From assembly GCF_006345805.1 (NCBI RefSeq), contig NW_021833039.1, positions 22,458 to 86,457 on the forward strand: a DNA stretch of 64,000 nt. The letters run 5' to 3'. Position numbers and translations under genes: made by a program. The notes under the pieces were generated by a model. That model searched no databases. It was not told the DNA's origin and saw only the letters and a list, made by a program, of their open reading frames with translations. Positions 70 through 56,973 of the stretch are shown here, piece by piece (within the stretch, counting starts at the first letter, position 1; each line of letters opens with the position of its first letter). The DNA comes from Octopus sinensis (taxonomy: Eukaryota).

Positions 70-662
70 TTTGGACCTCATCATGAATGTCGAGGACATT
101 AACGTTGTTCATTTTAATCAAATGCAGAAAATAATTTTTTGATTTTTTGGCGGGAAGGTTTTAAGGACCTCATCATGTAAGTCGAGGACATCGTAGTTGT
201 TCATTTTAACCAAAATGCAGAAATTTTTTTTTGGGGGGAAGGTTTTAAGGACTTCATCATGTAAGTCGAGGACATCGTAGTTGTTCATTTTAACCAAAAT
301 GCAGAAAATTTTTTTTTAATTTTTTTTTGGGGGGGAAGGTTTTAAGGACTTCATCATGTAAGTCGAGGACATTGTAGTTGTTCATTTTAACCAAAATGCA
401 GAAAATTTTTTTTTATTTTTTTTGGGGGGGAAGGTTTTAAGGACTTTATCATGTAAGTCGAGGACATTGTAGTTGTTCATTTTAACCAAAATGCAGAAAA
501 TTTTTTTTTAATTTTTTTTTGGGGGGGAAGGTTTTAAGGACTTCATCATGTAAGTCGAGGACATTGTAGTTGTTCATTTTAACCAAAATGCAGAAAATTT
601 TTTTTTATTTTTTTTGGGGGGGAAGGTTTTAAGGACCTCATCATGTAAGTCGAGGACATCGT
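70..662. repeat. Minisatellite, 7 copies of an 84-97 bp unit
   Basis: Anchor GTCGAGGACAT recurs at 89, 181, 265, 362, 457, 554, 649; unit length differs mainly in the poly-T/poly-G tract. Confidence 0.95.
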
Positions 663-689
663 ATTGCCAATTTGAAGTTGGTGTGCACA

Positions 690-844: not shown

Positions 845-1097
845 TAATAGATGGGGCTTATTCGGTCAAGAATGGACAGGAAAACTCCTGCAAATCTCTC
901 AATGGAACACTACTACGCCCCCATCCGGGAACAAACTTCCGAGGAAGACCACGAATCACTCTACCAACCCTCCAGGACCTAACTTTGATTGGAAAAGGGC
1001 TGAAATCAGCAGACGATCTTGAGCACCTGAGGGAACTATCGAGAAACAGAGGGAAGCGATTAACAAAACGCATCCAGGAGAGGGTGGCACAAGCGAG
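845..1097 (+). mobile_element. RTE-like non-LTR retrotransposon 3' fragment inside the Helitron
   Basis: Translation ...FRGRPRITLPTLQDL...[14 protein letters not shown]...[10 protein letters not shown] resembles the GRPR-containing C-terminus of RTE ORFs. Confidence 0.5.
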
Positions 1098-1124
1098 ATA
1101 ACTTTACTAAAGTTATTTTGCGGT

Positions 1125-1625
1125 GTGCTTATTAATAATACAATTGCTGGATTCAACCGGATTGAATTTTCAAACTCCTTAGATCCCTATGGAATGCCGA
1201 ATCATCTTTTAAAGTTAAAGATAGGCGTTCCAGTGGTTTTATTACGAAATCTTGCGCCACCTAAATTATGCAATGGAACGAGGTTAGTTATCAAAAATTT
1301 GATGGCTAACGTAATAGAGGCGACGATATTAACAGGTAAGTATAGAGGTGAGGATGTTTATATTCCACGAATTCCGATAATTTCTGATGAATTACCATTT
1401 AGATTTAAAAGGCTGCAATTTCCTTTAAGGATGAGTTTTGCAATGACAATAAACAAGGCCCAGGGACAGTCATTAAAGGTAGTTGGGTTATTTTTAGAGA
1501 GTGAGTGCTTTTCACATGGACAGCTGTATGTGGGATGCTCGAGGGTAGGCAGAAGAGAAAATTTATTCATATATGCCAAGGAAGGACGGACGACAAACAT
1601 CGTTTATCAACAGGCGATAGAATAG
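1125..1625 (+). pseudogene. Helitron RepHel helicase (PIF1-like) C-terminal fragment
   Basis: [57 protein letters not shown] helicase motifs; no Rep domain upstream. Confidence 0.9.
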
Positions 1626-3849: not shown

Positions 3850-5360
3850 CACTCCTCGACAAAAAAATGATTCAAAATTCATATTTAGTTTTTCTTTGAA
3901 AATCTTATAAATATTCTAATTTCAAAAAACTTAGTAGATTAGTTGTAATTATTATTATTTAATTTTAATAAAATATTTGTTAATTACATTAATTTGGAAA
4001 AATTAAAAGCATGACACACAATATGTTAGTATATGTCAGTGACAAAAAAAATGATTCAAAATTAACCCATTCCTAATTAATATCTGGTATGCTTTCCTTT
4101 TGCCGTAAAAATTTCCCAGCATCGTTTTTTAACTGATAGAATAAGTTTTTCAATAAAATGTTTTGGAATATTTTTCCAAATATGGAGAAGTTCCTGCTTT
4201 AGTTCTTTGACATTTTTTACATCGACTTTGCGTAATTCAGCCTTCATATGAGCCCATATGTGCTCAATTGGGTTCAGATCATGTTTTCTTTTTCGAAATA
4301 ATCCATAATTAACTTAGCAGTATGACAAGGTGGATTGTCCTGCTGAAAAATGAAATCGCAAAGTCCCATTTTTGCAACAGATCTCTGTAGCTTGTTGGCT
4401 AAAAGGTTTAAATATTTCGCCGAATTTAATGTCCCGTCAACACAAACTAATTCTCCAACCCCGTTAAAAGAAAAACATCTCCATACCATGAGTTTCCCTA
4501 TTTTTTGTTCTGTAAAATTTCAGACCAAATCAACCTGTTCCAAATTTTACAGTTGTTGAAATATTTTTAGACTTAAATTGTTCACCGCTTTTCCTATAAA
4601 CTATTTTTCTTGTTTTGTTTGGAATCACGTGAAAAACGCATTCATCCGAAAAAATTCTACTTTTCCATTCGTCATAAGATATGGTTAAAAATTTTTTCGT
4701 TATTTTCAATCTTTTTTCAGTGTTTTTTTGTTCAAAAATGGTTTATATTTAGCGACACGCCCAAATATACCATTTTCGTTTAGATTTCTTATAATTGTTC
4801 TTGATGAAATTTTTTTATTTGTTAGTTTCCCGATTTCATTTGAGATCTCTTTCGATGTTTTTGTTGGATTTGCTTCAGAATATTTTATCAATTCTTTTAA
4901 ATCATTTTCATTAAGTATTTTTGGTCGTCCAGATCCTGGTTTTCGATGAATCGTGCCTGTCTTCTTGTATCGTTGGATAAAATTAGACAATGTTGCCTCA
5001 TGTACCCCGACTTTTGAAGAAATTGCCCAAAATGGCATTTTGGTTTCATATAAGGCAATAATTTTTCCTTTCGTGAAGTCATCCATATGATTTTTCCTAA
5101 AATACAGATATTAAAATCTTATAAAGAGATATTTGTTTGGATAATTTTTTTGAATCATTTTTTTTGTCACTGACATATACTAACACATTGTGTGTCGTGC
5201 TTTTAATTTTTCCAAATTAATGTAATTAACAAATATTTTATTAAAATTAAATAATAATAATTACAACTAATCTACTAAGTTTTTTGAAATTAGAATATTT
5301 ATAAGATTTTCAAAGAAAAACTAAATATGAATTTTGAATCATTTTTTTTGTCGAGGAGTG
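3850..5360 (-). mobile_element. Tc1-like DNA transposon with IR/DR ends, defective transposase
   Basis: About 212-bp TIRs starting CACTCCTCGAC, each with a GACAAAAAAATGATTCAAAA direct repeat at both ends; TA on both flanks; HTH (RKPGSGRPK), SDE, QQDN and DLNPIE motifs broken by a frameshift and a deletion before DLNPIE. Confidence 0.95.
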
Positions 5361-13907: not shown

Positions 13908-14923
13908 TCAAAATTTAGTATGACCCCCCTGAGCATTAATTGCGTCTAAAATTCTGTTCCGCATTGTTCCAACAAGGGATGTCGCATATTCTATTGAAAG
14001 ATCATTCCAAATATTTTTTAATTCCTCAAATAGGTCACTCTTTTTTTTAAATTCAGTCCCTTTTATTTTATGTTTCATGAAGGCCCACACGTGCTCGATT
14101 GGATTCAAATCGGGACTTTGAGGAGGCCATTGTAATAACTCAATTCGGTGTTCATTAAAAAAATCTTTAGCCACCTTGCATGTGTGCTTTGGATCATTAT
14201 CTTGCTGATAAATTGGAGACCGGATCCCGGTTTTCTCCAAAAAGGCAACAAATAGTCCGCCAAGATACTTACATACAAGTTCCCATTCATAATTCCCTTT
14301 ATCCAAACAAGTTCCGAAAAACATTCCGATGTAAATGCGCCCCAAACCATTACGTTCTCTTTTCCAAACTTGACTGTTGTAGTAACATTTTCGCTAAAAA
14401 GCCTTTGTCCCCTTTTTCTCCAGACAAATTTTCTTCCATCGGGATTAAATAGATTGAATTTCGATTCATCACTAAAGATAACTCGATTCCAGAACACATT
14501 CGGCAACATGTTCCACTTAATGCACTGAGAAAGTCTAGTCTTTTTGTGTTCTTTCGACAGATATGGCCTTTTCGTAGGCTGAAACGTCGATATGTTCAGT
14601 TTTTTCAAATAGTTCCTCACTGTCTGTGATGTGACAGCAGTTCCCGTTTCAGAACGTAAAATTTCCGAACATTTTACGGAATTGAAAACAACGTCAGTTT
14701 TTTGTTCACGTTGAATTATTCCGAGATCATCAGAGTTAAGTTTAAATCTTCGTCCTGAGCCTTTTTTTCTCTGGAAGGAATCATTCATGGTGAAGTTTCG
14801 AATGACTCTCGAGATGGCACTCAGAGATCTTCCGGTCAAATTTCTTATTTCCCGATATGACTTTCCGACTTTATAATACGTAATAATTTCTGCTTTTTCT
14901 TGTAATGTAAGTTGTAAAACCAT
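13908..14923 (-). mobile_element. Tc1 transposase DD34E, full-length but with one frameshift
   Basis: HTH, FSDESKF, QQDNDPKH-34 aa-DLNPIE, GGHTKF*; a single T loss in a T-run near 14240 joins the two ORFs; TIRs not identified. Confidence 0.92.
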
Positions 14924-15189
14924 GTAACAAGAATCAACACGTGTAATAAAGTAAAAAAATGGTTTAAAAAACTCTTTTGTTCTCTTTTTTATTTTGTTTT
15001 GTTCTCTTTTTTATTTTGTTTGAAAAAAAATTGGTTTAAATACATATTAAAATCTTTGACGTTTGGATTTTTATAAAAGGCAAAAGTTAAGATTATAGCT
15101 TGAAATTCGATTTTTTATTAAAATAAATCAATCATTCAATAGAAAAAAATCGAGAAAATGAGTGTTCCGTTTTTTATTTGTATCGCTGT

Positions 15190-17353: not shown

Positions 17354-17693
17354 TTAACAAAGATTGCATGTCCTGCGACAGTTTTTTGCTATAAACACCG
17401 AAAAACCCTCAAATTTACAATTGTTTTGTATATCTTGACATAAAGATGAAGTATCCTTGCACACTTGAATGAAACTGTTTATTAAATGTGTACCTTTCTT
17501 GCACAACCCGCATGATTTTTTGCACATTTGCCGCATCTGTGAGCCCATCCAGTTCGGATACACACAGTACCCTCTCCTCGCATTCAAGTCGCAAAATTTT
17601 TTCTGATCAGTGCAGTCTATCAATAACTGTCCTAATTGACAAACCTTCAGTTGAATAGATGGCAAGACACAATGCAAAGAGGAATATAATCAT
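17354..17693 (-). CDS. Secreted tandem ShKT-domain micro-protein (about 92 aa)
   Basis: ATG 17693, signal peptide MIIFLFALCLAIYSTE, introns 17617-17644 (28 nt) and 17464-17493 (30 nt), two six-Cys ShKT domains ending CKKSCGLC and CRRTCNLC*. Confidence 0.85.
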
Positions 17694-17838: not shown

Positions 17839-19197
17839 TTATTGAAATGTGTTAGATTGTCTGAATAATTCTAGATTGACAAAATCGACGATGGCTGAAA
17901 CCATCTGCAGTAAAAGAGAAAAAGTCACCTAGAACAAACTCAAGCTAATGTACATTAATCCAGGCAGGAGTGTCAGTGACCTTCTTCCAATTGTACTCGT
18001 CTCCAAACCCCTTGTTGAAACTGACGTTGGCAGTGCACCACTCAGACCATCTAAACATGCGCTGATCGAATGCATCTGACATGTTAATGATTATCTCTAC
18101 ATTTGTTGTTGTCGGTCAAAAACAACTGAATATCTTGGATGATGTCTCTGAACACTTGCCGCATGTTGCAGATCTTCCTAGTGCTGAGTCACCCAATTAC
18201 CTCGATTCTCTGCCTACTCGTTAGTCTGGTGATACTGCGCCCCGACTTATGATTCACTTCAACAAAGATACAACGAGTCGCGTTATAAGTCAAACTGATC
18301 ACGTGTCGTGGGTTTCTTTCGAAGGTGACCCCCTCACAAATGTAACTTCTACTTGATGACTGAAAAGTGTAAAACTTTGAATGCTCGGAACATTTGTTAC
18401 TCTGAGTAGTTATGATTGCTCCCACGGAATATTCATGTTTACTCCCCAAGACACGATTTCCGGTGACTGTGAACTGATTTATCGAAGGACAGGCAGTGAA
18501 AGCGCCTCCTTTCGACACTCCGAACTCCCAGTACTGGACGGAGCACCAATGATAATAATCTCTATTAAATATCGATTGCATACAAATGTGGAGATATCGC
18601 TCAAATATTTCATCCAGTCCTCGCACTAGTCATGAATCACTCCAAAAATACTCAGTTCCGAGTTGGTGGAACAAGTCGACTCGTGTAACTTGTTTTCTAA
18701 AATGAGGGATTAATTCAACCAATGAGCAGCCTCTCGCTTCTCTCGCATCGGTAGTGGTATGGGTTTATGCACATGTGAAGTTGCCCTTTCCGAAATCCGT
18801 TTTCGCACAAAGAAACCAACTCACAGATTTCCACATCCTCCACCCGGAAGAGACGAAAGATAATCACGTGCGGGTAGTGTTTTCTCCCGGCAATCTGAAT
18901 CAGTCGTGGAAAGTCAACCTGAATTCGTCCATCAACAGTGGACTCGATGCTCACACATCCTGTCGCTTGACGCCCTCCGTTGACAATTGCTTTAACAAAG
19001 TCTTGGATAACCTCGGAACTTTTGAATCTTCGGAGAAAGCCTTTGATCAAAGTTCTTGAATTCTCCTGTTTTGTCCCGTCTCTGGGAACTGTGCAGAAAA
19101 TTAGATCGTCTGTGATTTCGTTGTACTCCCCGTCTTTCCCAAACATTTCTGAGACAGACGCGTTTTGTCCATTTAAATATCGTGTTGGTCCGGACAT
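17839..19197 (-). CDS. SMAD: Divergent Smad (MH1 + MH2), 5' end uncertain
   Basis: MH1: GCVSI, DGRIQ|IAGRKHYPHV, LCENGF, CINPYHY (Zn ligands kept); MH2: WCSVQYWE, SFNKGFGDEY..VTDTPAWI; joined by 22-26 nt introns; no C-terminal SSXS. Confidence 0.9.
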
Positions 19198-19379
19198 TGA
19201 ATACGCCGTTCCAGTTTGTCGAAATACTCATTGTTTGAGTTTCTCAGGGGCATCGGGAAACCCCATTTGCTCCCTCTTTCATTCAAAAAGTTTACGAATC
19301 ATGAAAATTTTGCCAAATATAGACTATGATAATTATAATTTCCATTTAAATTATAATAAGTGGGATTAATCTCCCTAAA

Positions 19380-20918: not shown

Positions 20919-23180
20919 ATGAATACTCTAGAAGATTTTCCATCTCACCCTCTGATTCGTGCTCTCTATGATGTCTGGTTGAGAATCTGTGAAGTGTCGC
21001 GTAATTTGATTCGTATAATATTTTTAATGTTAATTAGCCAACCTGAGTCAAAAGTTCGGCAGATTAATTGAAAAATCTATAAATTAGCATAATCCTAAAA
21101 ATATATTGGAAATCGCCGTCGACGCCTCGATGTGCTGTTCAATTTGCAGGCTGAAGGAAATGTTCAGGGAATTTCCAAACAGTGGCAACCCAGGTGAATA
21201 TACTAACGATTACTCCAGTAGTTTGGCATGCGGGAATCCTCACGGGCTGGTTAGTTGAGGTCCAAATGGATTGGATCATGACCAGCTTACGATTTGAGGA
21301 CAATCTATTTTTTTCTGACTTTGATTTCCCCGACTCGCAGTACTTTCCGATTTTGATCTGTAGGGAAGTGTTGGATTTGGAGACACTCCAGAGACTGCTT
21401 AATCAGATTCTTGACAACTATGAGGGTGTGGGGACTAATCTGAACATCCAAACTCTATTCCGACATATTGAAAAATTTGTAGTTGAGGGAAAATGTTTAA
21501 ATGAGTTAGTAATTGTCGTATCATTACAGTCTCGATATGCCTGTTCCCCCAGCCAAGTCCATCAAATGTAGACTCTTTGACGTTCGAACGATTAAATAAC
21601 ACGTAGAATGGGATCGCGTTCGGGGAATGTAGCCAGGATCTCCAAGTTTGTAGAAGAATTTCTGGCTTTGTGTACGAGGACGAAATCGAGCTGATAAAAT
21701 GGATGCATGTCCGCAGCTTCGAAAATGTTCTTCCGGTTGGTTCGTTGTTTAACAGCCAGAGTTCTCGATTACTGCAAATGTCCGACACAAACTCGAATCT
21801 AGAAATGTCCTTCAACCAACAAGGAATCAACGTCTTTTTCGCGCTGCTCAAATTCCTGGAGGTCAGTCCATAATAAAATTTGCAGAACGAATACGACGTC
21901 GCAAATTATTTCCGAGTCATATCCCCGGCGTCGTCAAATTGGGATTTGTGGGATAGAATGGGCTATGGAAATGAGTTTGTGGGGACCTACGAAGTATAAT
22001 TGTAAAATTCTACTCTAGAACATGTTTCTCATCTGTCCTGCACGAGACAGAAAAACCTATCTAATAAATAAGAAAATTCCTTTTCATTGGTCCGCCAGTC
22101 CACTCATTTTGTAGTATCTACTTCAAACAGATGAGTCCCCACTCTTGGGACTTGCCTGTTAAATTGGTAGACTACGATCCCATCTTCTCAAACGCCGGTC
22201 AGCACTCTGACATGACATTCTTGAACAGTGTCTCCAATTACGACGATTCGTGCGTGTTCTGTTCCAGGGAAAAGGTCACTCCCGACTTGTCAATTCTAGT
22301 TGCAAGACGAACTCGTCGGCGTCCTTAATTTGTGCAAGTCGATTTATTCCGCGTTTGACCTCGACTTGTCGGCAAAATTCATTTCAAAGCCTTTGATGAA
22401 TTCAACAAGACACGAGGAGTGTGATTTGATTACCCAAGTTGACGGTGATTAATTTACCAGATAATTCGGAGTGCTCTCTCGGCGACGGGGATCACCTTCG
22501 AAGAGAGCGCTGGATATTCCCAACTGCCCTTTGTACTATTCCTGGCTAATGTACTAGGTAACTTTTAACGTCCGGACGTATGACGACTCCACTTACACGT
22601 GCGGGATCGTGGAGGTGGACCTCACTTCGGGGGAGAGATTTGATTTATTCTACGAATAGTCTCACCCTTGTGTCCAATGCCTAGTGATGGTTGCAGAAAG
22701 ACTCCCGCAATCATTCATCATCAAATCATTGGGTCCATTCAAGAATTCACCAAGATCTTACTTCACCACTACAAGGGATATTGGTTTGTTCACATTCCTG
22801 ACCTCAGGCCATTCTGGCTTTCCCCGATACAATGCACCGTCGTTTCTTTGCGAGAGGAGTTTTTGGAATATTCAAAGACGGTACTCTTGGTGGTTATAAC
22901 CCAGGTCTATCAAACTATCCGAAGACGGCACATTCGGGCAGTCATGTCTTGGAATTTCGACTGTTGCATCTCCGATCGACTCAATAACGCAAAAAAGAAT
23001 TCAAGCTTTACTCTGGGTAATATGTCACTCCAACTACGCCCAGTCATTGGACGGGAAGAGCTTATGCAAAATCAAGTTCACGTGATTGGGACCAACTTGG
23101 ATTTGGGACGTGTTTCCGTGGAGGTGGCAATCGACTTGATGAGTGAATTACTCAATACGAAAAGCCGACAAGTTTTTTAA
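20919..23180 (+). CDS. Threonyl-tRNA synthetase paralogue with degenerate catalytic and editing sites (pseudo-enzyme); 5' end uncertain (20919 or 21130)
   Basis: Splicing about 14 micro-introns gives colinear similarity to ThrRS: VVWHAG, RRISGF, NEY..ANY..VISP..LW...ENMF, PFHCIYF, LPVKLVDY, DDSCVFC, CGIVEVDL, PAIIHHQIIGSIQEF, YWPFWLSPIQ, VIGREE. Confidence 0.85.
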
Positions 23181-24074
23181 CATCTTTTTGAGAATAAATA
23201 TGGCTTCAATCAATTGATAATTACAAATTAAGAAAAAAATAAACAAAAGTGCTTATATGCCTTCAACCTAAAAATATGAATATGTCGAGGGTGAAATCGT
23301 GACAGATGTCATAACACTGACAGTCGTCTTAAGTCACCATAAAATAATAATCCACGACAAAATAATTACTTTATCCTAACAGGCTATGATGTTTGTCTAT
23401 GATGACGCAGAATACAACTGACTGAAATTATTCCTTGGAGAGCATTACGTGGATATTTCGAAAGTTAAAAAATTCCGACTGAAAAAGCCGAAAATTTCAT
23501 TCTTATTGACAGAAAGCTATATCTGGAAAATACTAATCAACTCCACAAGCTTCAACACTTACAGAAGGTGCATAATATTTCTGAATCAACAAAACAGACG
23601 GTAAAGACAGCCTCAAAACATATATTAATTACAAATTTGGTTTTTCTCGGGTAAATTTCCTAATTATAAATAAAACTATGGGGGTAAATCGATCGAAACA
23701 TAAATTTAGCATCAAAAAGTATTCAATTTATAATTACTTAAGCAGTTCGTATTCGGAAGGACTAATTCTTCACTAAAATCAATAACCTTTGTTTCTTTCG
23801 TTTTTTACTTTGTACTTTTGTATTTTGAGAAGTTTGAAAAACTCATATTCTTTCTCAACATTGATTAGAAGTTCATTAAAGTAAGCTACATATAGCGTAC
23901 ACAAACAAAAATTGGAAGACATCTGTTAATTAAATTTTTATTTTTAAGAAAATGTTGTGAAAAGGTGGCCGATTTAGAATTTGGCCACTTTTCGAAATTT
24001 TATTTTACTTTTAATTATTTCTTACAAAATTAACATTTTAAGTATATAAAAATAAATTAAATATTGTGTTGTTG

Positions 24075-27387: not shown

Positions 27388-28936
27388 ATGCTGAGACTCT
27401 GTTTTAGTGTACTCATTTCGTGTTATAATCGTAGCACTCGGCCAAGCTCACTGCCAGCAGGGATTTGTCTAAGGGTATTCTCTGCCATTATTCCAGCTCC
27501 CCGTCTGTGCCTCAGTCCAGCACTCCCCCCCTCAGGGTAACCACTATACATGACTGGCATCAAGATCGTGGACTGTTCGTCAATTGAGGACTACTCCTCC
27601 AGCTCTGAGTTAGCACAACTAATAATGCAGAACAAATAATAATTAAGACGCCCAACTTTGCCGAGTCGATAAGTGAGGGAGACATAAAGTGGCACAAATG
27701 TAGGAGTACGACTAATTGACAGGCCTCGGGGACGTCGTCAATGTGGGGGATGTCCTGGGAGAAATAGAGACAGATAAGGTATCCACCACCCACCAACAGA
27801 CCTCCCTCGCTGTCATCGCCTCCTCCTCTGGCAAGATTACCGAATTCATTGCCTCCGACGAGTCCAGTGTCACTCCCGGCACTGACCTCGTCCGCATTGA
27901 CACATCATTCCACCCTACTGACCAATCGACTGCTCCTTCTACTCCCCCTACTGCACCCAGCACTGCCCCTACTCCACCCAGCACTGCCCCTACTGCACCC
28001 AGCACTGCCCCTACTGCACCCAGGACTCCCCCTACTGCACCCACCACTGCCCCTACTGCACCCAGCACTGCCCCTACTGCACCCACCACTGCCCCTACTG
28101 CACCCAGGACTCCCCCTACTCCACCCAGCACTGCCCCTACTGCACCCAGGACTCCCCCTACTGCACCGAGTGAGGGGGATGTGGAGAGCAGAGAAGGAGA
28201 GACGAGGGTGAGGGGGATTGTGTGATTGCAGATTAAAATGTCTCGGATGAGGAAGAGGATCGGGGAGAGACTGGGGGAGGCTCAGTCGACGTACGTGATG
28301 CTGACGACGTTCAACCAAGTGGACATGAGGTAGGTGGTGGTCACTCCCAGCAATGTCATCGCCATGCGCAAAAAGTACAATGATGTGGCCCAGAAGGAGA
28401 GGAATGTGCGCCTGGGGTTCCTCTCCGCCTTCATTGTGGCGGCCGCACGGGCATTGAGGGACACTCCCGTGGTGAACGCGGTGGTGGAGGGGGATTCCAT
28501 CATCTACCGGGACTACGTCGACATCTCCATTGCCATCTCCACCCCCAAGGGACTCGTCGTCCCCGTCCTCAGAAATATCCTCGGACTCAACTTTTTGGAG
28601 GTCGAACAGAAACTTGGGGAACTGTCGAGGAAAGCGAGGGAAGGGACACTGACTGTCGAGGAAATGGACGGAGGGACCTTCACAATCAGCAATGGGGGGG
28701 TCTTCGGGTCGCTCATGTCCACGCCCATCATCAATCCCCCCCAGTCCGCCATTTTGGGACTCCACGCCATCGAGGACAGACCTGTGGCCGTGGACGGACG
28801 GGTGGAGATTCGGCCGATGATGTACCTCGCCCTCACATATGACCATCGCCTCATCGACGGTCGCGAGTCCGTCACCTTCCTAAAGTCCATTAAAGAGGCC
28901 GTGGAGGATCCCGTCCGCATGATGGTGGGCATATGA
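27388..28936 (+). CDS. DLST: Dihydrolipoamide succinyltransferase (2-oxoglutarate dehydrogenase E2)
   Basis: Lipoyl domain [12 protein letters not shown]...IETDK; catalytic domain [38 protein letters not shown]. Confidence 0.97.
27950..28168 (+). repeat. Coding 21-bp tandem repeat (about 10 copies) forming a [14 protein letters not shown] linker in DLST
   Basis: Units actgcacccagcactgcccct, actccacccagcactgcccct, actgcacccaggactccccct read directly. Confidence 0.95.
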
Positions 28937-29089: not shown

Positions 29090-30205
29090 CATTTATTAAA
29101 TCACCAAGACCACGCTAAAAACCGAACAAATGTCACGTGATCCCGATGCACTCAACCAGGGACCTCATCCTCGCTCGGTGGTCTTTCCACGAGCCCACAC
29201 AAGATCGCACTGGGCGGCAGGCCGTTTTTGGCGGAGCAGTCGCTGACGGGCCCAGGTTCAGCTTGATGAGGTCTTCCAGAGAGGCTGGACCGGGGCGTTG
29301 GCTATCAAGTGACCAACGATCGGTTAATCTGAGGGCCCTTTGTTGGGCCTCCTCGATTCGCCTCCTGTTGGACCACGATAGCCGCGGACCCCATGATCCG
29401 CAAGCGTACGCAACACAAGGTTCGAAGTACTGGCGATAGATATTCGCCAGTACTGGGTGCGACCCGTTTTTCCGAATACCAGATAGAGTTCGCAGAATAT
29501 TCAGTTTATGTTCGCATTTGCGAAGGACGAAGGAGGTTGTCCACATGAGGGGAGAAACAGAGGTGCATGTCGAGGGTTACCCCTAGGACCGTCTGACTCC
29601 TGCAGAAGGGAACGGATATATTATTCAGCTTTAAGTCGACAGACGTCCTTCCCAATCTTTTATCCGAGGTGAAGAGGGACGTGGCGGACTTCGCCGCGTT
29701 TACTACGAGCCGGTTGTCCGTCAGCCATAGGTTCAGCCGATCCAAGTTAGCTTGGAGCCTTTCAGAGGCCTTCTGGATGTCCCGGTCCCGTGAGGCTAGC
29801 ACGATGTCGTCCGCGTATGAGAGAACAATGTCATTGTTGTCGAGGGGGCGAGGGAGGTCTTCCAAAAATAGGTTGAAGAGAGCCGGGGATAAGGGGGATC
29901 CCTGAGGTACTCCGTTGGGTAGAAGACGAGATTTGGACTTCAGACCACCGAGGCACACTCTTCTTCTTCGTCCACTTAGGAAGTTGGTAATCCATATTTT
30001 TAGCTTCGGAGGAAAGTCGGATTGGAATATCTTCCTTGAGAGGAGCTTCCTCGAGACGGAATCGAAGGCTTTATGGATGTCGACGGAGCAGAGCACGGTC
30101 TTTTGGTGCCTCGGTTTGCTGGCAAAACCGGTACAGATGAAGTTTGACAAGGATTGGAGGTACGAAGACGTGGACTTGGCCTTCTTAAAACCATGTTGAA
30201 AATGT
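29090..30205 (-). mobile_element. 5'-truncated LINE (RT), GIT-stop family
   Basis: VDIHKAFDSV, GVPQGSPLSP.LFN, SYADD; one frameshift near 29550; ORF ends GIT* then short UTR and AATAAA. Confidence 0.93.
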
Positions 30206-34904: not shown

Positions 34905-36275
34905 AATCAAAATTTATTCCAAAGACCACCGTTAACCAAAAGAAAAACTAACTAGGTGATCCCGACGAATTTGATCATTGCTCTCAGCTTCGCTCTGTGC
35001 TGCTCTCTTGAGCCCACACAAGATCGTTGAGGGCGGATCGTTCCTTTATACCATTGATGCTCTTTTATATTCTTCTCAATGAGAGTTTCGAAAGAGATTG
35101 GTGGTTTGATAGCTTCACCTGTATACCACCTTTCGGTAAGTTGAAAGCTCTTTTCTGGGTTGCGGAGATTTTACGAATGTTTGTATTCGAAATCAGTGGC
35201 CCCCATGAGGCACAAACATATGAGATACATGGTTCGATATACTGTGAGTAGAGTGTTTTAAGTATAGGGTGATTTCCCATTTTCCATAGACCAGTTAGGC
35301 ATTTCAGGAGGTTGATTTTCTTTTCACATTTGTTCAACACATTTGTGACATGTTTAGAGAAGTTCATGTGCGTGTCATAAGTTAATCCCAATATCTTTTG
35401 CCATTTGCTGAAAGGTAATACTCTTCCCTCCACAACAACTTCGATTGAAGTTTTCGATAGTCTTTTGGCTGAGGAGTAGAGAGTTGTGACAGATTTTTCT
35501 GTGTTGATCGACATCCGGTTTACGTTAAACCACTCAACTAGGTGATCCAGGTTTTGTTGTAATCTTCCTTTTGCTGTTTGGATGTTCTGGTCCCGTGATG
35601 CCAATACAATGTCATCTGCATAGGCCAGCAGCAGATCGTCATGCCATTAGGCTTCGGAATATCGGCCGTAAACAAATTGAATAGGAAAGGTGATAATGGT
35701 GAGCCCTGGGGTACACCATTTGGGAATAGACGGGAAATGGAACGAATGTTTCCAAAGCATACTCTTCCTCTTCGACCGCTGAGGAAGTTAGTCAACCAGA
35801 GTTTGAGGTCTTCAGGGATGTTTGATTGGTAGATTTTCTATGCTAGGTTTTTTCTAGGCACAGCGTCGAAGGCTTTGTGGATCTCCAGCGAACAAAGTAC
35901 AGTTTTCTGATGTCTTGGCTTACACGAAATGCCAGAATGGATAAAGTTAGTCAAGGAGCTAAGGAAGCTTGCAGTGGAACAATCTTTTTTGAATCCATGT
36001 TGGAAAGCCTTGTTGGGAATGCTGTTAATGATTTTTGTGAGGATGAGTTTTTCCAGAGTTTTTGACATGGAACATAATAGGGAAATTGGCCTGAAGGAGG
36101 CCGGCTCTTGTTTTGGTTTTCCACTCTTCAAAATTGGGCGGATGTTTTCCAATTTCCAAATCGTTAGGATTGAGTTGTAGTTAATCGACCAATTGTAGAT
36201 TTTTATGAGAACACTGATTCCCTCATTCCCTATGTTTTTCAGGAGAATTATAGGAATGCCGTCGGGACCATGTGA
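34905..36275 (-). mobile_element. 5'-truncated LINE (RT), GIT-stop family, decayed
   Basis: GPDGIP, SFRPISLL, HGFKK, KAFDAV, PQGSPLSP, AYADD; stops and frameshifts; ends VGIT*. Confidence 0.93.
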
Positions 36276-36968
36276 ATATCAGACCATTATTTCGAGAATG
36301 CAATGAAATAATGATATTTAACAAATAAAATCCTATTAAACCAAAATTTGCTTAGTTTTTTTGAACTATCTAATTCAATCCTTTAATCCAAATTGTTGTA
36401 TAAAGTGTTTAAAGTGTCCTTTGGTTAATAAAGTGTTTAAAGTGTTTGTGACCTCTCTTTTTTTTCTAAAATACTTTCTTACATATCTTCATTAAAGGGT
36501 TCTTCAGCATATTTTTTTAGGGTTCATTGGGATATCTTCGCGAGATCAGTAACAGAGGCGTTTCATTTGTACTTTTGTTGTCTTCGAAAATGTATGGTCT
36601 GCTGAACTTAAACCTTCGATACAGTCGACGTATCTACTTGGTTTTCAACATTTGGTGTAACTGACTGAAGAGAATCTCTAATTTTCTTTTTTCATTCACA
36701 GGCACATACAGTCTACTATTTCATTGTGTCTTGGAGGCAATTTTTGTTTAACATTTTACCATATTGAGCGGCAACCGTTTTTTTGCTTCTCTTAAATTAT
36801 ACATCTAAAGCAAGTAAATTTTATCAGATTTTTGAATGCGGTGATGATGCAATTATTTAAAGTATTTATCACATTCTTAAAGTTCGAGAATTGAAATGGA
36901 TAGAAAGCATTAAAAGAAATAGACATAAATTAAATATCGAACGAGAAATTATTCATTAAAACAGATCA

Positions 36969-38735
36969 TTAGGGGGCCCTTTGATCAGAAGATTGTGAAA
37001 CATGAAAGTGGACTGCGAGCCAATTGCCTTCGACGCGTTGCCACACAATAGTCTGGACAAATCGAACACAACTCACTCCGTACAACACCGACCTAACACT
37101 TTGAGCAATTATCCAACTCATCCTGTCGACGCAGAATGGAGACGAGTGTTATGACCGCGCTGTTGTCTGACAGAATGCGCACGTTGGGGAGCTCCACCGA
37201 CGACACCATGGGGATTGTGGCTGTCCGTTAAGACAAATAAAACTGAGTTTAAACTGCGATTGATAGTATTCGCGAGCACACACGAGAATACCCCCAGTGT
37301 GCATGTCCAGCAGTGTCGCGTCCTTGGAAACGAGTTTACTGAAATGTAAAATAGAAAGACCACCGAAAAGTGTCACTGTCGCTCTCAGCAATGCAATTTA
37401 CCAACTGATTAGACAATCTGATTATTTCGTCCGGGGGAGGCGCAGGATGCACTTTCTTGTCACCAGAATTGTTAGTCAGCTTATCTAGGAATACTCAACA
37501 GCAAGGTACTGAGGGTGACGCTCTTGGTCGCGAAAAGTGTCGACAGAATGGCAACCTGGGACTAGAAAGGTCTCCCTCTCACCTTTAGTTTCCGCCTGGC
37601 GTTGAATTTTTTGAGTTGGTTGAGAGTGGCCTGGCGGTGGAAAGCGGGGATGATGTTATCCGCATTCTGGCCGAATTAGGCGAGGACAAACAGCAATCCA
37701 GGGCAGTTTGAGGACATCGGCTGCTGTGAACCGTTCTTTGGCGTCAACGTTGAGCAAATTCTTGATGATGTACTTTGCTTCCTCGGAAACCAAATCCCAC
37801 TCGGGGGAAGGGAACTGGAATAAGGGAGGTGGCTACATTGACAATCCCCGACTTGATCTGTCTGAACAGCCCCTTGGACGTGTCGTCCCAGAAGGGAGGA
37901 TACCCAGCCAGGAGAATGTACATGACCACTCCCGCCGCCCAGTTGTCCACGGGGAAGGAGTAGGGCACCTTGGACACCACCTCGGGGGACAGGTAGCCGG
38001 GAGTGCCAGCCAGACCAGGAATGAGTGGACAAGACAACCATGCCAGGCGGGAGCACCCGTGGACTCGACGGCCAGCCCAAAGTCGGCAATCTTGAGGACA
38101 GCGTCGCGGTCTTTGGAGGAGAGGAGGAGGTTTTCGGGCTGTGGTTAAGTGAGGGCGTGCCTTGAGGTCTCGGTGGACTATTTTCATGGAGTGGAAGTAG
38201 GCGATGCCGGAGAGGAGTTGTTTCATGCAGCGACTGAGGGTGAGTGTGGGACATACCTCGCGTCGGCCTCGCTGTAAAAGTCCCTGGCGACAATGTCATC
38301 GAACAACTCGCCTCCACTCACCCTGGGAATGAGGACTGGACGTACAGTTCGAGGATGATGTAGAACATTCTCTTGGACATGATTGCGTCACACAACTCGA
38401 CTGTGCGTGAGGGGGAGGACTCACCAATGTTCTCGTGCTTCAGTTTCCGACATATCCGCACTTCCCGCTCTATTTTCTGGAAGTCTGCAATGTCCCACAT
38501 CACTTACCGCGCAGGGGCAACTTTTCCGTGTTGAATATTTTGGCGGCCATGTTTTTTCTGGTGGCAATGTGAACGCAGTTCTTGACCACCGAGAAGGCCC
38601 CTCTAACGTTGACAGAGCGCAGTACTTTCCGATTTGGCTGCCCAGTTGGTAGCGACTCTCGAACTCGTCATCAGACTTGGACAAACAGGTAGAGGTGAAC
38701 ATTCTAGAATGTTTAGGAATATCGTCGTAGGCCAT
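36969..38735 (-). CDS. CAMK2: Calcium/calmodulin-dependent protein kinase II
   Basis: GK|GAFSVV, HRDLK|PEN, DFG, AGTPGYLSPEV, regulatory HRQATLNQLKKFNARRKLK|VAILST, hub domain ending W..VHFH. Confidence 0.95.
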
Positions 38736-38950: not shown

Positions 38951-41440
38951 TTAGTGATCATACAGTCGGGAGTATCGGGCGAGTGTCCACAGAGGGAACA
39001 CATTCCGGTAACTGTTGTAGGAAATGGCACAATTCTCGTTGAACACTCCCGACACGTTTTCCTACACTATTTGCCCCACTCCACCTGCGGCCAATCCCCG
39101 TTCGGGAGTTGTCGACTCTTCAGGAGGGACACGCCCCTTTCGATGACGGACACATTGGGGAACCTACAATGTGGACAACTCCTACTTGACAGCCATCAGT
39201 CCCAGCAGGACGAAGGACGTGTTGACGACCTGCGAGGTGGAGGACGACACGTACTTCCTCAACTCACAACTCTCGAATTCCTCCCCCCACCCTCCGTCGG
39301 CCAACTGTCTCTCCAACATGAAGACAACTCCCTTGGTCAACTCCAGCAGGGGGGCACTGCAATGGTCGGCCTACACTCACCCGTCCACACACGTCCTCCC
39401 GTACTCCCCAAAGAACTCCATGGCGAACCAGAAGGCGTAGGTGAAGCACACTCCCCACGACCTACGATGAGGGAGGACACCCACCCAATCCACGACCCGT
39501 CCGGCCTCTGCTTCTTTCGGATAAAGTCAAAGCCGGCATCGACCACCCTCCTGACAGGTGAGTGCCACACACAACTTGATGTCCTCTCCTCGGTAGTCGG
39601 GGAACTCCCTGTGGAACTTGAGGAGTCCTCTGAGGGCAGCACTCGTGCACTCCACGAAGGTGTAGTCGATCATTATATTCCCAAACACCTCCGAAGGGTT
39701 GAACAACTCCAGCAGGCGTCCCCCTCGCTGTCTCTCGTAGGAGGCGAATCCCCCGTCCCCACAAACCATGTCCATAATCTGTCGTCGAGTGAGGGGAGTA
39801 CACAGTCCACGCAGTCTCTCAGTCTCCCCAATCCCGCCTGAGGGAGGCAACTATATTTCCTGCACAGAACAAGAAGAGCCAGTCCCTCCCCAGTGCAGTC
39901 ACTGATTATGTACGAGTAGTCGTTAGTCGAGAAGGGAAACCCCCCTTTATTCCGCTGGCGATAGAACTTGGCATAGTCGGGGGGGTTGTCCTCGATTTGC
40001 GAGTCAATCACCCACTCCACTCCTCTTCTCACACTCTCCACTATTTCCGGGTGGTCCTCCATGTCCTTCATCTACCAAACACACGGCCTCCTCAACCTCC
40101 AACATGGCCAGACATGCAAACACGGTGTCCCAGAACTGAGACCCGTTCGTCCCCTGCGAGTGAGCCCGACCAGTACCCCCATTTTCATGCCGTCCACCCC
40201 CAGCCACAAAAAGTCGTCCAGTCGGTCGACGTGTCTCTGAAAGGCCAGCATGTCCCCCCTGTGCCACCGGACGAGCATGTTCATGCACTTGGATATCTGC
40301 CAGTCAACACACAACCCCACCGGCCCCACTCCGATGTAGTCCGTGAACGTGTCCTCCGCACAGATATGCTCGTATATCACTTCCAAACTCCTCTTCCGGA
40401 TGGACGGCCAGTGGAGTGCCTCGTACAGGTTGGCCAGTCCGTGGAAGCAGCGAAGGGGGAGGGAGTGAGGAGTGTACAGGTCACTCTCGGCCACGTTCAT
40501 TCGATTGGCAGTCCACTGAATTGGCTCGAATGGGCCATCGGGGAATAACTCCTGGAATAGGAGAGGAAGGCAACCGATCGGAGTTGGAGGATGAGGTCGT
40601 CGAGGGGGGCAGTGATCCTGAGGGCATAGCAGTAGCTCATAGCAATGTAGATGACTCGACAGTGACACCACATCTTGGACGGGTGGAATGGCAACCACTC
40701 GGGGAGGAGCCTTCCTTTACTCGAATAGGCCAACCACAACTCGGGGAGGACTGCGTTGAATCCATCCCAATCATAGCAATTGAGCACTCCCAACCAAAAC
40801 TTGCCCCAACTGGGAATTCCCAGAGTGCCCCCCAGTCGAGCCACAACAGCTCTGCCTCTGCACATGATGTCCTCCCCACTCTCCACTCCCAGCAGACGGA
40901 GGGACACGTAGTTCAGCACAGTCCCCAGCACTGTGGGCGGGGAACAGATGTGTCTACTCTTAATTGGAGGAATCGTACAGTCCCCACCCACCCGACGGAC
41001 ACTCGACTGACCGCAGATATCGAATCATCTCCGCCTTCTTCTCCGCACACAGTTCGACCTTTGTGATGTAGCACACAATGAGCATTCCTTCCGTGTGGGG
41101 GGAGACCAACCAGCCATCAGGAAGAGTGGCCCGCCGTAGTCGTACGCCCAATGTCCATCAGTCGCCTGAATGGCTCGCATGAAGAGTGCTGCGTGTTCGG
41201 CATGTTCTCCCGCTGTCGTGGGGTGTCTCGCTGTCGTCATGTCTTGGATGCTCAGCCCCACCGAGTGTCTCTCCAAAATGCTCTGCTGTTCGACATTGTC
41301 CTGTGGGTAGTAGAACCACCGCTGTCGTCCTTCCAATTATATCCTCCCCACCTACCGCGCTCGCAAAGCAGTCTCCACCGAGTCAGGTCAGTCGCCGGCT
41401 CCGTTTTGTGCGGCCCTCCGTAATTTCGTTCTCTCGACAT
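38951..41440 (-). CDS. LSS: Oxidosqualene cyclase (lanosterol synthase family)
   Basis: [44 protein letters not shown]|[29 protein letters not shown] repeats, YRNVFPLW. Confidence 0.96.
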
Positions 41441-45891: not shown

Positions 45892-47827
45892 TCACTCCTG
45901 CAAAAGACTAACAAGTGCGTCAAAGAATCTACTCTTGTCCTCGTCGAAAACCTCGACGACTACTCATAAGGGAGAGACCTCACCATTGGAGTCAAAGTAG
46001 TCGGGAATAAAGCGGGCATTGCTTTGCACGGCCGCCTGCTCGAATGCCTTGCCAAACAGACTATACTAAGGAGAGTGGACTGACTTGTTGGAATCGTCGG
46101 AGGAGTCGTAGGGGGGAATGCCCACAATCATAATAGTCTGGTCAGCCCTCCTGGCCGGCACACTCAACACCAACGGGAGAGTCCTGGCCCGTCGATGGCG
46201 ACTCTACTCTGGGGAAGTGAATGCCAACCACGGACACGAATGCGTGGAGCAGATGCCGGGCAAAGAGCTGAATACTGACAGGACTGGAGTAACTATAGAG
46301 GGAGGAATCCTCCTTTTAATAAAAACAACAACTTCCTGGGAGCAGTAGAGCAAGTTCCCCGTGGAAATGACGTGTCTCATGTCGAGGAGACTCTGCAACT
46401 GAAGGAAGGCAGCCTTGTACTTCTGACACACCACGTCAATGGGCGACCGGAGTTTGGCGATGTCGAAGCTGTGAATGAGGACAACACTCACCAGCCCACA
46501 TAATCCATCGCCTCCGCAAAGTAGGACGACCCCGACACCCCCTCCTCCTACCCTTCACCCAAACCAGTACCGATTGACTCAACACACTGGACAGGATGTG
46601 GACATGGTCGGAGGCAGCGAAGGCAGACCCGTAGCCTTGTCGGATGGTGAAGGAGGACATGAACAGACCACAGTTCTCCAGTCTGTACTCGGGCATGTGC
46701 GTCTCCATCAGTGTCTCCAGTTTGGACTTGAAGTGCACGTCCATCGAGGCGTACTTCTGCTTGCACTGCTCCAACGGAATCCTGCCAGTCGACAACTCCT
46801 CCCAACCCCAACTGGGCAAAGAACTCGTAGAAACGTTTCCTTCCGTTAATTTTCCATATCCCGAAGACGGAGGCGGGGACGAGTGTGTGCCACAGACTCT
46901 CGAACAGTGACCAATGTCGGTAGAGAACAATGTTCATTTCCCTCCTGAATGTGACCGTGAGGGGCGTCTCCGAGGCTCTGCCACTAACTTGGGGAGGAGA
47001 CCGATTATTAAGGCGGAGGGCGTGTGACTGGAGGGCAATCACCGCCTCCATGTATTTGTCCTCCACCACTTTGTTGGTCAGGAATTGCTCAGTGCAGCCC
47101 ACCACTGCGTACCACAACAACAGTTTGCTGTCCTTGGATAGTTTCCACGACAGTTCGAACATGAGGAGAGCAGTCTGCGTGTCAGTGCACATCATTACAC
47201 TCGAAACTGACCAACTGAACTTGGAGTACTCAAACAGCAGGGAATCCCTATGTTAGTGACACACACCACACCGATTGGCAGTCCACTCCCAAGTGTCCTC
47301 CTCACTCTCCTGGTCGCGGAACACGGACTCGTAGGGAGGCACGTGCCCAACTTGGTCCTCCTTCGAGCAGATGACCACTTGGAGGGAGTTGTACACGTTC
47401 GCCACGTCCAAAGGGCGGTGACTGGCAGTGTCAGGCAGGACTACACAGACTTGTCCAGAATGTAGAATCTCCCATGTTCGGGCTGTTCCAGCAGCTCGCA
47501 AATGTCCAAAGTGGCCCCAAAATTTATTAGAACTGCCACGACGTTCTGCACATTCCGAATGACGGGCAACCTCTTCCCAGGTCTGCTGATTGTATTTTTC
47601 GCAGAATTCATTCCAGCCAGAGACGGGGATGAAGGTGTAGGTGAGTTGGTCACTCTCCAGCATGTGCTAGACATACCCCGGGAGGACTACCTGCAGACAG
47701 GCCCATGCACACACCGCGTCCACGTCGCAGGCCGCGAAGACGATGACTCTCTACAAATAGCCCGCAGACCGACCTTCCCGAGTAGTTTGACATAAAAATC
47801 GGTTCTTAGGTCATGCACCACAACCAT
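45892..47827 (-). CDS. CDC45: Cell division control protein 45
   Basis: CDVDAVCA, LINFGATLD, HRPLDVANVY, LYRHWSLFESL, FSTDIGH, EDKSRFFDALVSLL-like C-terminus. Confidence 0.95.
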
Positions 47828-52825: not shown

Positions 52826-53136
52826 TCACCATCCTCCGACAGTCCTATAGTGGTGTGAATAATATTAAATATAGTAATGAGCATAAAGTATGTGCTATTT
52901 ATTACGACGGAAATCACTTTTGAAGGACACATTCAATGTCTTACCCTCTGAGGCACCCATCAAATGGAAGGTGAGTACATCCTCCGTGTCCTCGGCAGTC
53001 CTATGTGAATAATAATAAATATGGCAATAGTAATAAGCATAACGATCAATGTAAAAGGTAATATATGTGCTATTTATTACGACGGAAATCACTTTTGAAG
53101 GACACATTCAATGTCTTACCCTCTGAGGCACCCATC
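52826..53136. repeat. Tandem duplication of the ELAV-like gene 3' end
   Basis: 73 bp identical at 52889-52961 and 53064-53136; flanking parts (about 52826-52888 vs 52975-53063) similar but with indels. Confidence 0.9.
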
Positions 53137-54079
53137 TTGGACATGTTCAGGGCGGCCACGGCAGCACAGGCCTCCTCGTATTTCACAAAGTTGACAAAAC
53201 CAATACTACTCGCCCAGGTGGTGTTGCCTGGGAGGGAATTGACCGAGGCAATGGCCCCGAACCGAGAAAAGAGTTGGTACAAGTGGAGATTAGTAGATCC
53301 TGGGATTAGGTTGGACACATAGACACAGTGGTGTTGCACAGGGGGCACATTCCGGGCAACAGGACTATACCGAAAGTAGTCATAGTGGGAGTAGGGGAGG
53401 AAGCCAGTGGTCACTTTGACGGAGGACTGTCGGGCATATCGCACAATTATGTGTTTGTCAGTGCCTGGGAGTACTTGTTTGCAGTTGAGCACGGCAATGG
53501 CCGACTCTGCACACACAGGGTGGTAGAACATGACCATTCCACTGCACTTGGACATGCCGTGGGCGTCCACCAACAGTTTGAGGGACTGCACAGGCCCGAA
53601 TGTCTCGAAAAGCATCTTCAAATTGTTTTCCATGAACGAGGGCGGCAGGTTCTGCACGTACAAATTCCGCAGTTCAGTCTTGCCCGTCTGACAGCGAGAG
53701 AAGCTGACGTGGATGGCCTTTTGGTCGACGACATGCCCGTCGAGTGTGTCGATGGCCTTCTGGGACTGTTCCTGTGTGCCGTAGGAAATGAATCCGTAGC
53801 AGAGGGAGGTGCCACACGACTGGTCCATCATCAGTCGACAGTTGGTGACCTGAGTGAGGGGGAGGCCGTACATTGGGGACTGTCGTGAAGAGGGAGAATA
53901 ACGATTCGGGGGTGATTGAGGGGGCCAGGTTGCTGACAATCAGTTCGCACTTGTCCACTACGAGTGTGTGGGGGAAATGCCCAATGGACTGCTGAGGGGG
54001 GAGAGGGGGATTCATGTACCCGTTTCTCGCATTTGTTTCTACATTGTAGGGCTGGATAACAACAACCAACAAAACTCAT
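53070..54079 (-). CDS. ELAV/Hu-like three-RRM RNA-binding protein
   Basis: LIVSNL...CRLMMD...SLCYGFISY...AIDTLDG, NLYVQNLP, RRM3 VYVSNL...GFVNF...LNVSFK. Confidence 0.88.
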
Positions 54080-55870: not shown

Positions 55871-55929
55871 GTTCTTTCCGACCCATCTCTCTGCTTTGTG
55901 TCGCTTCGAAAGTTTGGGAGATTCATTTT

Positions 55930-56900: not shown

Positions 56901-56973
56901 TCCTCACCCATACAAAAACAGCCGTTTCAGTCATTGCAAACCATTTCAGTCCACAGAGAACTATGAAAATGTC

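Follow-up and report, generated by a model that had tools for sequence, protein, structure and literature searches.

A candidate non-catalytic paralogue of threonyl-tRNA synthetase encoded by a mini-intron gene in the Octopus sinensis assembly

Introduction

What is the function of a gene that retains the fold of a threonyl-tRNA synthetase (ThrRS) after most of its active site has been replaced, and to which organism does it belong? These questions are raised by positions 20919-23180 (+ strand) of a 64,000-nt stretch of contig NW_021833039.1 in the Octopus sinensis assembly GCF_006345805.1; we call the whole stretch the window and the gene the ThrRS-like gene. Paralogues of aminoacyl-tRNA synthetases (aaRSs) that are devoid of activity, such as SLIMP, HisZ, POLG2 and mL39, are textbook cases of the recruitment of translation enzymes to new roles. 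A first-pass annotation made from the letters of the window proposed that the locus encodes a paralogue of this kind. Our analyses indicate that the product is probably a selected, non-catalytic ThrRS paralogue, i.e. a pseudo-enzyme, and that the DNA is probably that of a dicyemid parasite of the octopus.

A single open frame is obtained after removal of very short introns

Six-frame translation of the locus yields, on the + strand, short open pieces that hop between frames. A shortest-path search restricted to GT-AG introns of 20-38 nt joined the ATG at 20919 to the TAA at 23178-23180 via 11 introns; one is 34 nt long, and the other ten are 22-26 nt. Guided by homology, we then added in-frame introns to this path. 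A comparison with the structures and sequences of ThrRSs also led us to shift one intron from 22114-22135 to 22090-22114 (25 nt), whose removal restores PFHCIYF...SW (PGHCLMF...SW in ThrRS). Four in-frame introns were added (21340-21363, 22784-22807, 22881-22904 and 23017-23043), which the path search could not see because they are stop-free. Each has GT-AG borders, is 24-27 nt long and exactly bounds an insertion of eight or nine residues relative to every ThrRS.

In the preferred model the successive introns are 34, 25, 24, 25, 25, 24, 25, 25, 25, 23, 25, 26, 24, 24 and 27 nt long. All are of the GT-AG type, and all but the 34-nt one are 23-27 nt long. Thirteen of the 15 combine such a length with a position exactly at a frame change of the homology or at an eight- or nine-residue insertion, and once they are removed the protein aligns with ThrRS without gaps across the core and the anticodon-binding domain. 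The first-pass annotation, which had predicted some 14 GT-AG introns of 23-35 nt and one open frame after splicing, was therefore close to this model. The spliced coding sequence (1881 nt, 626 codons) contains no in-frame stop, as against 32 and 37 in its other two frames and about 36 (minimum 18) in shuffled versions. Its GC contents at codon positions 1, 2 and 3 are 0.45, 0.34 and 0.52, and G is enriched at position 1; this composition is of the coding type.

The 5' end of the model is uncertain. Its first intron (21054-21087), the 34-nt one, is atypical, and the start codon may instead be an ATG near 21129, in exon 2. A possible upstream exon starting from an ATG at 20768, with an Arg-rich N-terminus, was dropped, as no GT-AG intron joins it in frame. 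When introns of 20-60 nt were allowed, a minimum path of 10 introns was also open, and it was rejected because it deletes homologous segments and needs introns of 34-59 nt.

A canonical ThrRS fragment of another short-intron eukaryote, found outside this assembly in JGI metagenome 3300047123 (contig Ga0499899_2501, 3460-4375), carries a 45-nt in-frame insertion after ...GGKW, at the position of the 24-nt intron 22784-22807. This suggests that the intron position after ...GxW and before PFWLSP is old and conserved.

The core and the anticodon-binding domain are those of a divergent ThrRS

The catalytic core and the anticodon-binding domain of the protein are homologous to, and colinear with, those of ThrRS. 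Using phmmer against the PDB, the best structure match was human cytoplasmic TARS1 (4hwt), colinear with residues ~262-554 (E=4.1e-29); the ThrRSs of E. coli (about 1e-23), yeast mitochondria and S. aureus were also matched. The comparison with ThrRS profiles that had been proposed from the outset aligned residues 238-598 with positions 180-544 of the 565 of the NCBIfam model thrS (TIGR00418; E=4.5e-44). The score of 151.3 bits is below the curated equivalog cut-off of 383.65, and the Pfam matches to tRNA-synt_2b and HGTP_anticodon are both under their gathering scores.

In a MAFFT alignment of the core and anticodon-binding domain with eight diverse ThrRSs, identity to the ThrRS-like protein is 21-26%, whereas the eight share 35-62% among themselves. 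Only 28 of the 69 columns invariant in the eight are kept, and 41 are replaced. This ~23% identity does not reflect a general divergence of the lineage, because another enzyme of this contig, the dihydrolipoamide succinyltransferase (DLST), shares 64% identity with an animal DLST.

Nearly all catalytic residues are replaced

We fixed the E. coli numbering by a C-terminal alignment that pairs P464 with the Pro in GYSQLPF, and H511 with the His that opens HHQ. The catalytic roles of the ThrRS residues were established by structural and biochemical work on the E. coli enzyme. The transfer-step histidine is replaced in the ThrRS-like protein (H309Y; GHW reads GYG), as are two zinc ligands, the cysteine that also binds threonine (C334I; NCPGH reads KIPFH) and the histidine of DDAH (H385C; DDSC). 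Motif 2 carries R363S and E365A (HRNE to FSNA), with R375S in the same region (RVR to SVS). The active-site loop GAFYGPK has become GYSQLPF (Y462Q, K465F), and the active-site stretch QCGTVQ reads TCGIVE (Q479T, T482I, Q484E). In motif 3, HRAILGSMER is replaced by HHQIIGSIQE, with R512H and R520E. The zinc-site triad C334/H385/H511 reads Ile/Cys/His, H511 alone being unchanged.

The substitutions that the first-pass annotation had singled out, namely KIPFHC, FSNA, DDSC, YSQLPF and GSIQE, are thus all present, as is the retained H511. That annotation had left open that transcripts spliced in another way might restore the motifs. Each stretch with catalytic substitutions is, however, contained in one exon, and alternative splicing is therefore unable to restore them. 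Among 51 retrieved ThrRS matches, scored by the first H....GS... pattern match in each sequence, 48 have Arg at the position of R520. Of the other three, one is a fragment that has Gln there, one is a spurious repeat protein, and in the third the pattern matched by chance upstream of a real motif 3 that is canonical. The ThrRS-like protein departs from functional ThrRSs in its family score, its motif 2 and motif 3 arginines, its zinc site and its editing motifs. Its residues predict a pseudo-enzyme incapable of threonine activation or tRNA charging.

The N-terminal third may contain a degenerate editing domain

The colinearity with ThrRS had been proposed to extend from the N2 editing domain to the anticodon-binding domain. 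It is firm for the core and the anticodon-binding domain, and weak for N2. In local alignments, VVWHAGIL...EDNLFFSDFDF...DLETLQRLLNQIL matches ThrRS in register over the first half of N2. Against five ThrRSs, this similarity reached z=5.5 (0 of 1000 shuffles) and 3.8 for two and ~1.7 for two others, and it was absent for the fifth. From these local alignments, a degenerate N2-like domain is plausible in this region. An hhalign comparison of the region with a five-sequence profile gave no better than P=0.02, over the linker only, and structure prediction of a contiguous 94-residue N2-like fragment returned a pLDDT of 37.6, too low to be informative. The proposed loss of the HxxxH editing motif holds in that WHAGIL lacks the second His, within a domain that is itself weakly detected. 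VVWHAGIL stands in place of that motif in exon 3, and EDNLFFSDFDF in place of ENGFYYDF.

No equivalent of the second editing motif, the CxxxH of DLCRGPH, was found in either splice model of the 21495-21632 region. The first-pass annotation had read it as SICLFPQ, and we rejected this reading, which requires atypical introns of 35 and 30 nt and is no better than shuffles (z=0.8). If introns of 25 nt are placed at 21505-21529 and 21582-21606, the frame changes and reads DLDMPVPPAKSIKCRLF, which is also at shuffle level; we preferred this model for exon 5 on intron length alone. No TGS domain was found by tblastn in the gene, upstream of it or anywhere else in the window.

The window is probably dicyemid DNA

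The contig, 86,457 bp long, corresponds to VCDQ01011561.1 of GCA_006345805.1, where the neighbouring DLST open reading frame (ORF) is on record. This is an Octopus sinensis assembly (PMC10700109). Introns of ~25 nt do not fit a gene of the octopus. In a survey of 51 genomes, the only animals with introns below 30 nt, of ~25 nt, were dicyemids (Dicyema) and myxobolid myxozoans (PMC13644364). The median intron of Dicyema sp. is 27 nt long, about two thirds being shorter than 30 nt (PMC6543705), and a published comparison reports similarly short introns for Dicyema japonicum. The latter was collected from the kidneys of O. sinensis, its host (PMC6736024). With 14 of its 15 introns at 23-27 nt and minimal GT...AG signals, the ThrRS-like gene has the character of a dicyemid nuclear gene. 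The flanking genes for a SMAD MH1 protein and for DLST share its mini-introns, and introns of ~21-27 nt are found in genes of the window. The whole window is thus probably DNA of a dicyemid kidney parasite (Dicyema) co-assembled with that of its octopus host. This draws attention to contigs of parasite origin in a reference assembly of octopus that is in wide use.

The window shows a sharp compositional step. Positions 1-24000 have a GC content of 0.31-0.40 and are rich in transposon remnants, and positions 24000-62000 are gene-dense, with a GC content of 0.42-0.55. As both halves have animal genes with mini-introns, an assembly chimera is unlikely.

Selection on a non-catalytic protein or decay

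Which residues are kept is not random with respect to their chemistry. Of the positions invariant in ThrRSs, Gly and Pro are kept in 14 of 20 cases, as against 8 of 30 for polar or charged residues (Fisher p=0.004). The motif 1 proline, which belongs to the dimer interface, is retained, and the best-kept stretch comprises the motif 3 helix and the junction to the anticodon-binding domain (HHYKGYWPFWLSPIQ). The Gly/Pro bias, the motif 1 proline, the motif 3 junction and the stop-free frame together argue that the fold is under selection and that catalysis has been abandoned. The active site is ablated in an intact frame that appears to be selected, selection being judged here from frame integrity and residue-class bias in one sequence. 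The first-pass annotation had taken the unbroken frame to imply a selected non-catalytic role. The frame and the Gly/Pro bias support selection, and we infer that the protein is translated; its role is likewise deduced. A non-enzyme of 626 codons kept in a lineage with an extremely reduced genome also argues for a real function.

Several observations weigh against this reading. Searches with phmmer against the PDB, and of Pfam and NCBIfam, gave no significant match for the first ~240 residues, the gene sits in the AT-rich, transposon-rich part of the window, and two or three of its exon joins are uncertain, in addition to its start codon. In the anticodon-binding domain, the conserved Glu of GDKE is kept in exon 16 and the invariant Arg of the V.VR strand is replaced by Ile. 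This loss weakens a simple tRNA-binding model, and it cautions against assuming that this anticodon-type domain would recognize tRNA-Thr normally. Finally, no orthologue was detected when the C-terminal 164 residues were compared exhaustively, by phmmer, with 1.84 billion representative proteins; dicyemid gene calls are apparently missing from this collection, and the negative result therefore carries little weight. The 49 matches were canonical ThrRSs or, in two cases, spurious repeat proteins, and none has the substitutions of the ThrRS-like gene. A word-indexed protein search similarly returned three distant bacterial ThrRSs and no orthologue, no recorded sequence was identical to the C-terminal ORF, and the supplements of the dicyemid genome papers contain no aaRS lists.

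The absence of an orthologue from protein searches, the complete loss of the catalytic residues, the low-GC, transposon-rich surroundings and three atypical or ambiguous exon joins would also fit a relic, i.e. a duplicated or former mitochondrial ThrRS gene that decays as a pseudogene and has not yet acquired a stop or frameshift. In addition, trnT is absent from the published mitochondrial tRNA set of Dicyema sp. (PMC6543705), and a mitochondrial ThrRS could thus have become dispensable. However, neutral decay that erased the active site should have destroyed the frame as well. With 41 of 69 invariant positions replaced, dozens of stops would be expected, ~36 for an unconstrained sequence of the same composition, and none is present in 626 codons; neutral decay thus fails to account for the frame. 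At each of the 12 junctions where the frame shifts, a GT-AG intron repairs it, and 11 of these introns are 23-26 nt long. Codon positions have a coding-like composition, and the structural Gly and Pro residues are selectively kept. We consider a relic unlikely. Conservation of the frame and of fold-determining residues would equally be expected of a neofunctionalised enzyme, in which the class II scaffold with a remodelled Ile/Cys/His pocket serves another ligand or chemistry; precedents are AsnA, HisZ, EpmA and the amino acid:carrier-protein ligases. H511 is kept, H385 is replaced by Cys, another potential metal ligand, and aaRS scaffolds have been co-opted repeatedly (PMC9437257). Nevertheless, with R363, R520 and the flanking acidic or amide residues replaced by Ser, Ala and Glu, such a pocket would be unable to hold ATP, which makes this explanation improbable.

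It is scarcely credible that the protein is the working ThrRS of the organism, cytosolic or mitochondrial, with an unusual active site. Although tblastn found no second ThrRS gene within the window, no ThrRS is known to aminoacylate when K465, the Cys that binds zinc and the arginines of motifs 2 and 3 are missing; among the true ThrRS matches examined, a single one lacks the motif 3 Arg, and the contrast with DLST of the same contig (64% versus ~23% identity) argues in the same direction. An artefact, whether an assembly chimera or an open frame created by the free choice of GT-AG pairs, appears very improbable. Path-finding can always hide some stops in 'introns', the 10-intron path with its 34-59-nt introns is also open, and the contig has parasite-type genes inside a host assembly. 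In contrast, the introns of the preferred model cluster at 23-27 nt, the published dicyemid mode, they coincide with breaks in the homology such that their removal leaves the core and anticodon-binding domain aligned to ThrRS without gaps, and the genes on both sides have the same mini-introns. A selected, non-catalytic paralogue is therefore the explanation that we favour.

Under this explanation, the gene would be a dicyemid one encoding a paralogue of eukaryote-type ThrRS. The protein would have retained the class II fold, the motif 1 dimer-interface proline, the junction between motif 3 and the anticodon-binding domain, and that domain itself. The zinc/threonine site, the arginines with which motifs 2 and 3 bind ATP, the histidine of the transfer step and the residues of the editing site have been lost. 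By analogy with SLIMP, the protein is most likely a non-catalytic partner or scaffold, that is, a subunit or an RNA- or protein-binding platform whose class II dimer interface might pair with active ThrRS or with itself. If the protein is indeed inactive, a canonical ThrRS must exist elsewhere in the genome.

A mitochondrial origin is possible, in which case the gene could be a former TARS2 freed from catalysis. Dicyemid mitochondria have a minicircle genome and aberrant, arm-less tRNAs, with no reported trnT. The published mitochondrial tRNAs of Dicyema sp. (H, I, K, L1, N, P, Q, R, S2 and Y) form an incomplete set that lacks trnT (PMC6543705). More speculatively, an absent trnT could have released the mitochondrial ThrRS from catalytic constraint. 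A doubtful but specific extension is that dicyemids have an obligate partnership of an active ThrRS with a dead paralogue, perhaps mitochondrial and independent of that of SerRS2 and SLIMP, to which the dead subunit would contribute either the binding of tRNA or RNA or a surface for new interactions.

Comparison with other proteins derived from synthetases

The first-pass annotation cited POLG2 and mL39 as precedents and omitted the closest one, SLIMP. POLG2 and HisZ illustrate the reuse of a class II core and/or an anticodon-binding fold as a non-catalytic regulatory or processivity subunit. They differ from the ThrRS-like protein in their ancestors (GlyRS/ProRS-like and HisRS, respectively) and in having defined partners, Pol gamma A and HisG. 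mL39 (MRPL39) is an animal protein that descends from ThrRS and has lost the synthetase function. It keeps only the N-terminal TGS and N2-like parts, and the ThrRS-like protein keeps the opposite end, the core and the anticodon-binding domain.

SLIMP is a catalytically dead mitochondrial SerRS paralogue of animals that forms a heterodimer with the mitochondrial SerRS2 (PMC10570016). Like the ThrRS-like protein, it is an animal class II aaRS paralogue in which the fold and a tRNA-binding appendage are kept and the active site is ablated (PMC10570016, PMC9437257). As a non-catalytic partner of an active synthetase, it provides the best functional analogy. Unlike the ThrRS-like protein, it derives from SerRS and is widespread in animals, with clear orthologues; its heterodimer and its binding to LON have been demonstrated by experiment.

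The cores and anticodon-binding domains of TARS1, TARS2 and ThrRS-L (TARSL2/TARS3) are homologous to and colinear with that of the ThrRS-like protein. All three are active synthetases, and ThrRS-L keeps aminoacylation activity (PMC9437257). In contrast, H309, K465, the Cys that binds zinc and the arginines of motifs 2 and 3 are missing from the ThrRS-like protein, which also has neither the residues for editing nor a TGS domain. A review of duplicated aaRSs lists only active ThrRS duplicates, T2 and ThrRS-L (PMC9437257), and literature searches for a ThrRS pseudo-enzyme or catalytically inactive paralogue yielded nothing relevant. A near-full-length dead ThrRS is thus apparently unreported, in keeping with what the first-pass annotation had stated for animals. 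If expressed and conserved among dicyemids, the ThrRS-like protein would be a second independent animal example of active-site ablation in a class II synthetase; if the proposed partnership is true, ThrRS would become the second animal class II synthetase to work with a catalytically ablated paralogue.

Features of the locus and its surroundings

The coordinates of the gene, its exons and the neighbouring features are collected in Table 1.

Table 1. Features of the ThrRS-like gene and of the rest of the window (positions are those of the window)
Feature	Position	Strand	Description	Basis
ThrRS-like gene	20919..23180	+	16 exons separated by 15 mini-introns; the preferred model encodes 626 aa	Stop-free after splicing; ThrRS homology
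Exon 1 (uncertain)	20919..21053	+	MNTLEDFPSHPLIRALYDVWLRICEVSRNLIRIIFLMLISQPESK; no recognisable domain	No Pfam match, no TGS similarity
Exon 2	21088..21193	+	N-terminal, without significant similarity; followed by 25-nt intron 21194-21218	
Exon 3	21219..21339	+	Start of putative degenerate N2-like domain; followed by in-frame 24-nt intron 21340-21363	Local alignment, MAFFT
Exon 4	21364..21504	+	N2-like helical part, EVLDLETLQRLLNQILDNYEG...EGKCLN; 3' boundary uncertain, 25-nt intron 21505-21529 or 35-nt intron 21495-21529 of the first-pass annotation	
Exon 5 (frame uncertain)	21530..21581	+	DLDMPVPPAKSIKCRLF in the 25+25-nt model; in the first-pass annotation 21530-21602, reading SICLFPQPSPSNVDSLTFERLNN; DLCRGPH missing in both	Intron-length prior
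Exon 6	21607..21861	+	N2-core linker RRISGFVYEDEIELIKW (resembles RIYGxxF...) and start of the catalytic domain QQGINVFFALLKFLE	
Exon 7	21886..21993	+	Motif 1 region NEYDVANYFRVISPASSNWDLWDRMGYGNEF; motif 1 Pro kept; GHW to GYG (H309Y)	
Exon 8	22019..22089	+	NMF...NKKIPFH; zinc/threonine ligand C334 to Ile	ThrRS alignment
Exon 9	22115..22274	+	Whole motif 2, DYDPIFSNAGQHSDMTFLNSVSNYDDSCVFCSREK; R363S, E365A, R375S, H385C	Contiguous in one exon
Exon 10	22300..22437	+	LQDELVGVLNLCKSIYSAFDLDL...; conserved structural helix and strands of the core	ThrRS alignment
Exon 11	22461..22532	+	IIRSALSATGITFEESAGYSQLPF; degenerate GAFYGPK loop, Y462Q, K465F	ThrRS alignment
Exon 12	22558..22658	+	VTFNVRTYDDSTYTCGIVEVDLTSGERFDLFYE; Q479T, T482I, Q484E	ThrRS alignment
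Exon 13	22685..22783	+	Motif 3, PAIIHHQIIGSIQEFTKILLHHYKGYW; H511 kept, R512H, R520E	ThrRS alignment
Exons 14, 15	22808-22880, 22905-23016	+	First half of the anticodon-binding domain (PFWLSPIQCTVVSL...); in-frame 24-nt intron between them	HGTP_anticodon, sub-threshold
Exon 16	23044..23180	+	End of the anticodon-binding domain (VIGREELMQNQVHVIGT...) and TAA; preceded by in-frame 27-nt intron 23017-23043	
AATAAA polyadenylation-type signal	23193..23198	+	Starts 13 nt past the stop codon	Read directly in the sequence
SMAD MH1 ORF	18718-19227	-	Apparent in-frame 24-nt intron, DGRIQV[DFPRLIQI]AGRKHYPHVI	Pfam E=3.7e-16
DLST gene	about 27716-28936	+	64% identical to an animal DLST; in-frame mini-intron of ~21 nt	
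Mobile-element remnants	1023-1622 (+), 4709-5110 (-), 13911-15010 (-), 29136-30204 (-), 35068-36278 (-), 55231-57102			
Further animal-type genes	37679-38317 (-), 39676-40716 (-), 46551-47252 (-), 53073-53939 (-), 58527-58886 (+)			

Pfam confirmed three of the mobile elements, a Pif1-type (Helitron-like) helicase fragment, a Tc1/mariner-type transposase (14108-15010) and a reverse transcriptase ORF (29509-30204), and other transposase and LINE-like ORFs were identified by eye. The repeat content of D. japonicum is reportedly ~49%, and the mobile-element remnants are consistent with this figure. Among the further animal-type genes, Pfam confirmed a protein kinase, CDC45 and an RNA-binding protein with three RRMs; by eye, the kinase is CaMK-like, and lanosterol synthase-like and methylmalonyl-CoA epimerase-like ORFs were also recognized. 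No match was obtained when the window was scanned with Rfam and for tRNAs.

Within the DLST gene, at 27941-28167, a 21-nt unit is repeated in tandem (10.8 copies) and codes for a linker rich in Pro, Ala and Thr. Another tandem repeat, at the left edge of the window (143-663), has a 97-nt unit in ~5.6 copies, the inner copies being 96% matches. Lastly, an ORF on the - strand at 17357-17689 codes for two Cys-rich repeats that resemble the ShK type by eye (C..C......C...C..SCGLC and C..C......C...CRRTCNLC).

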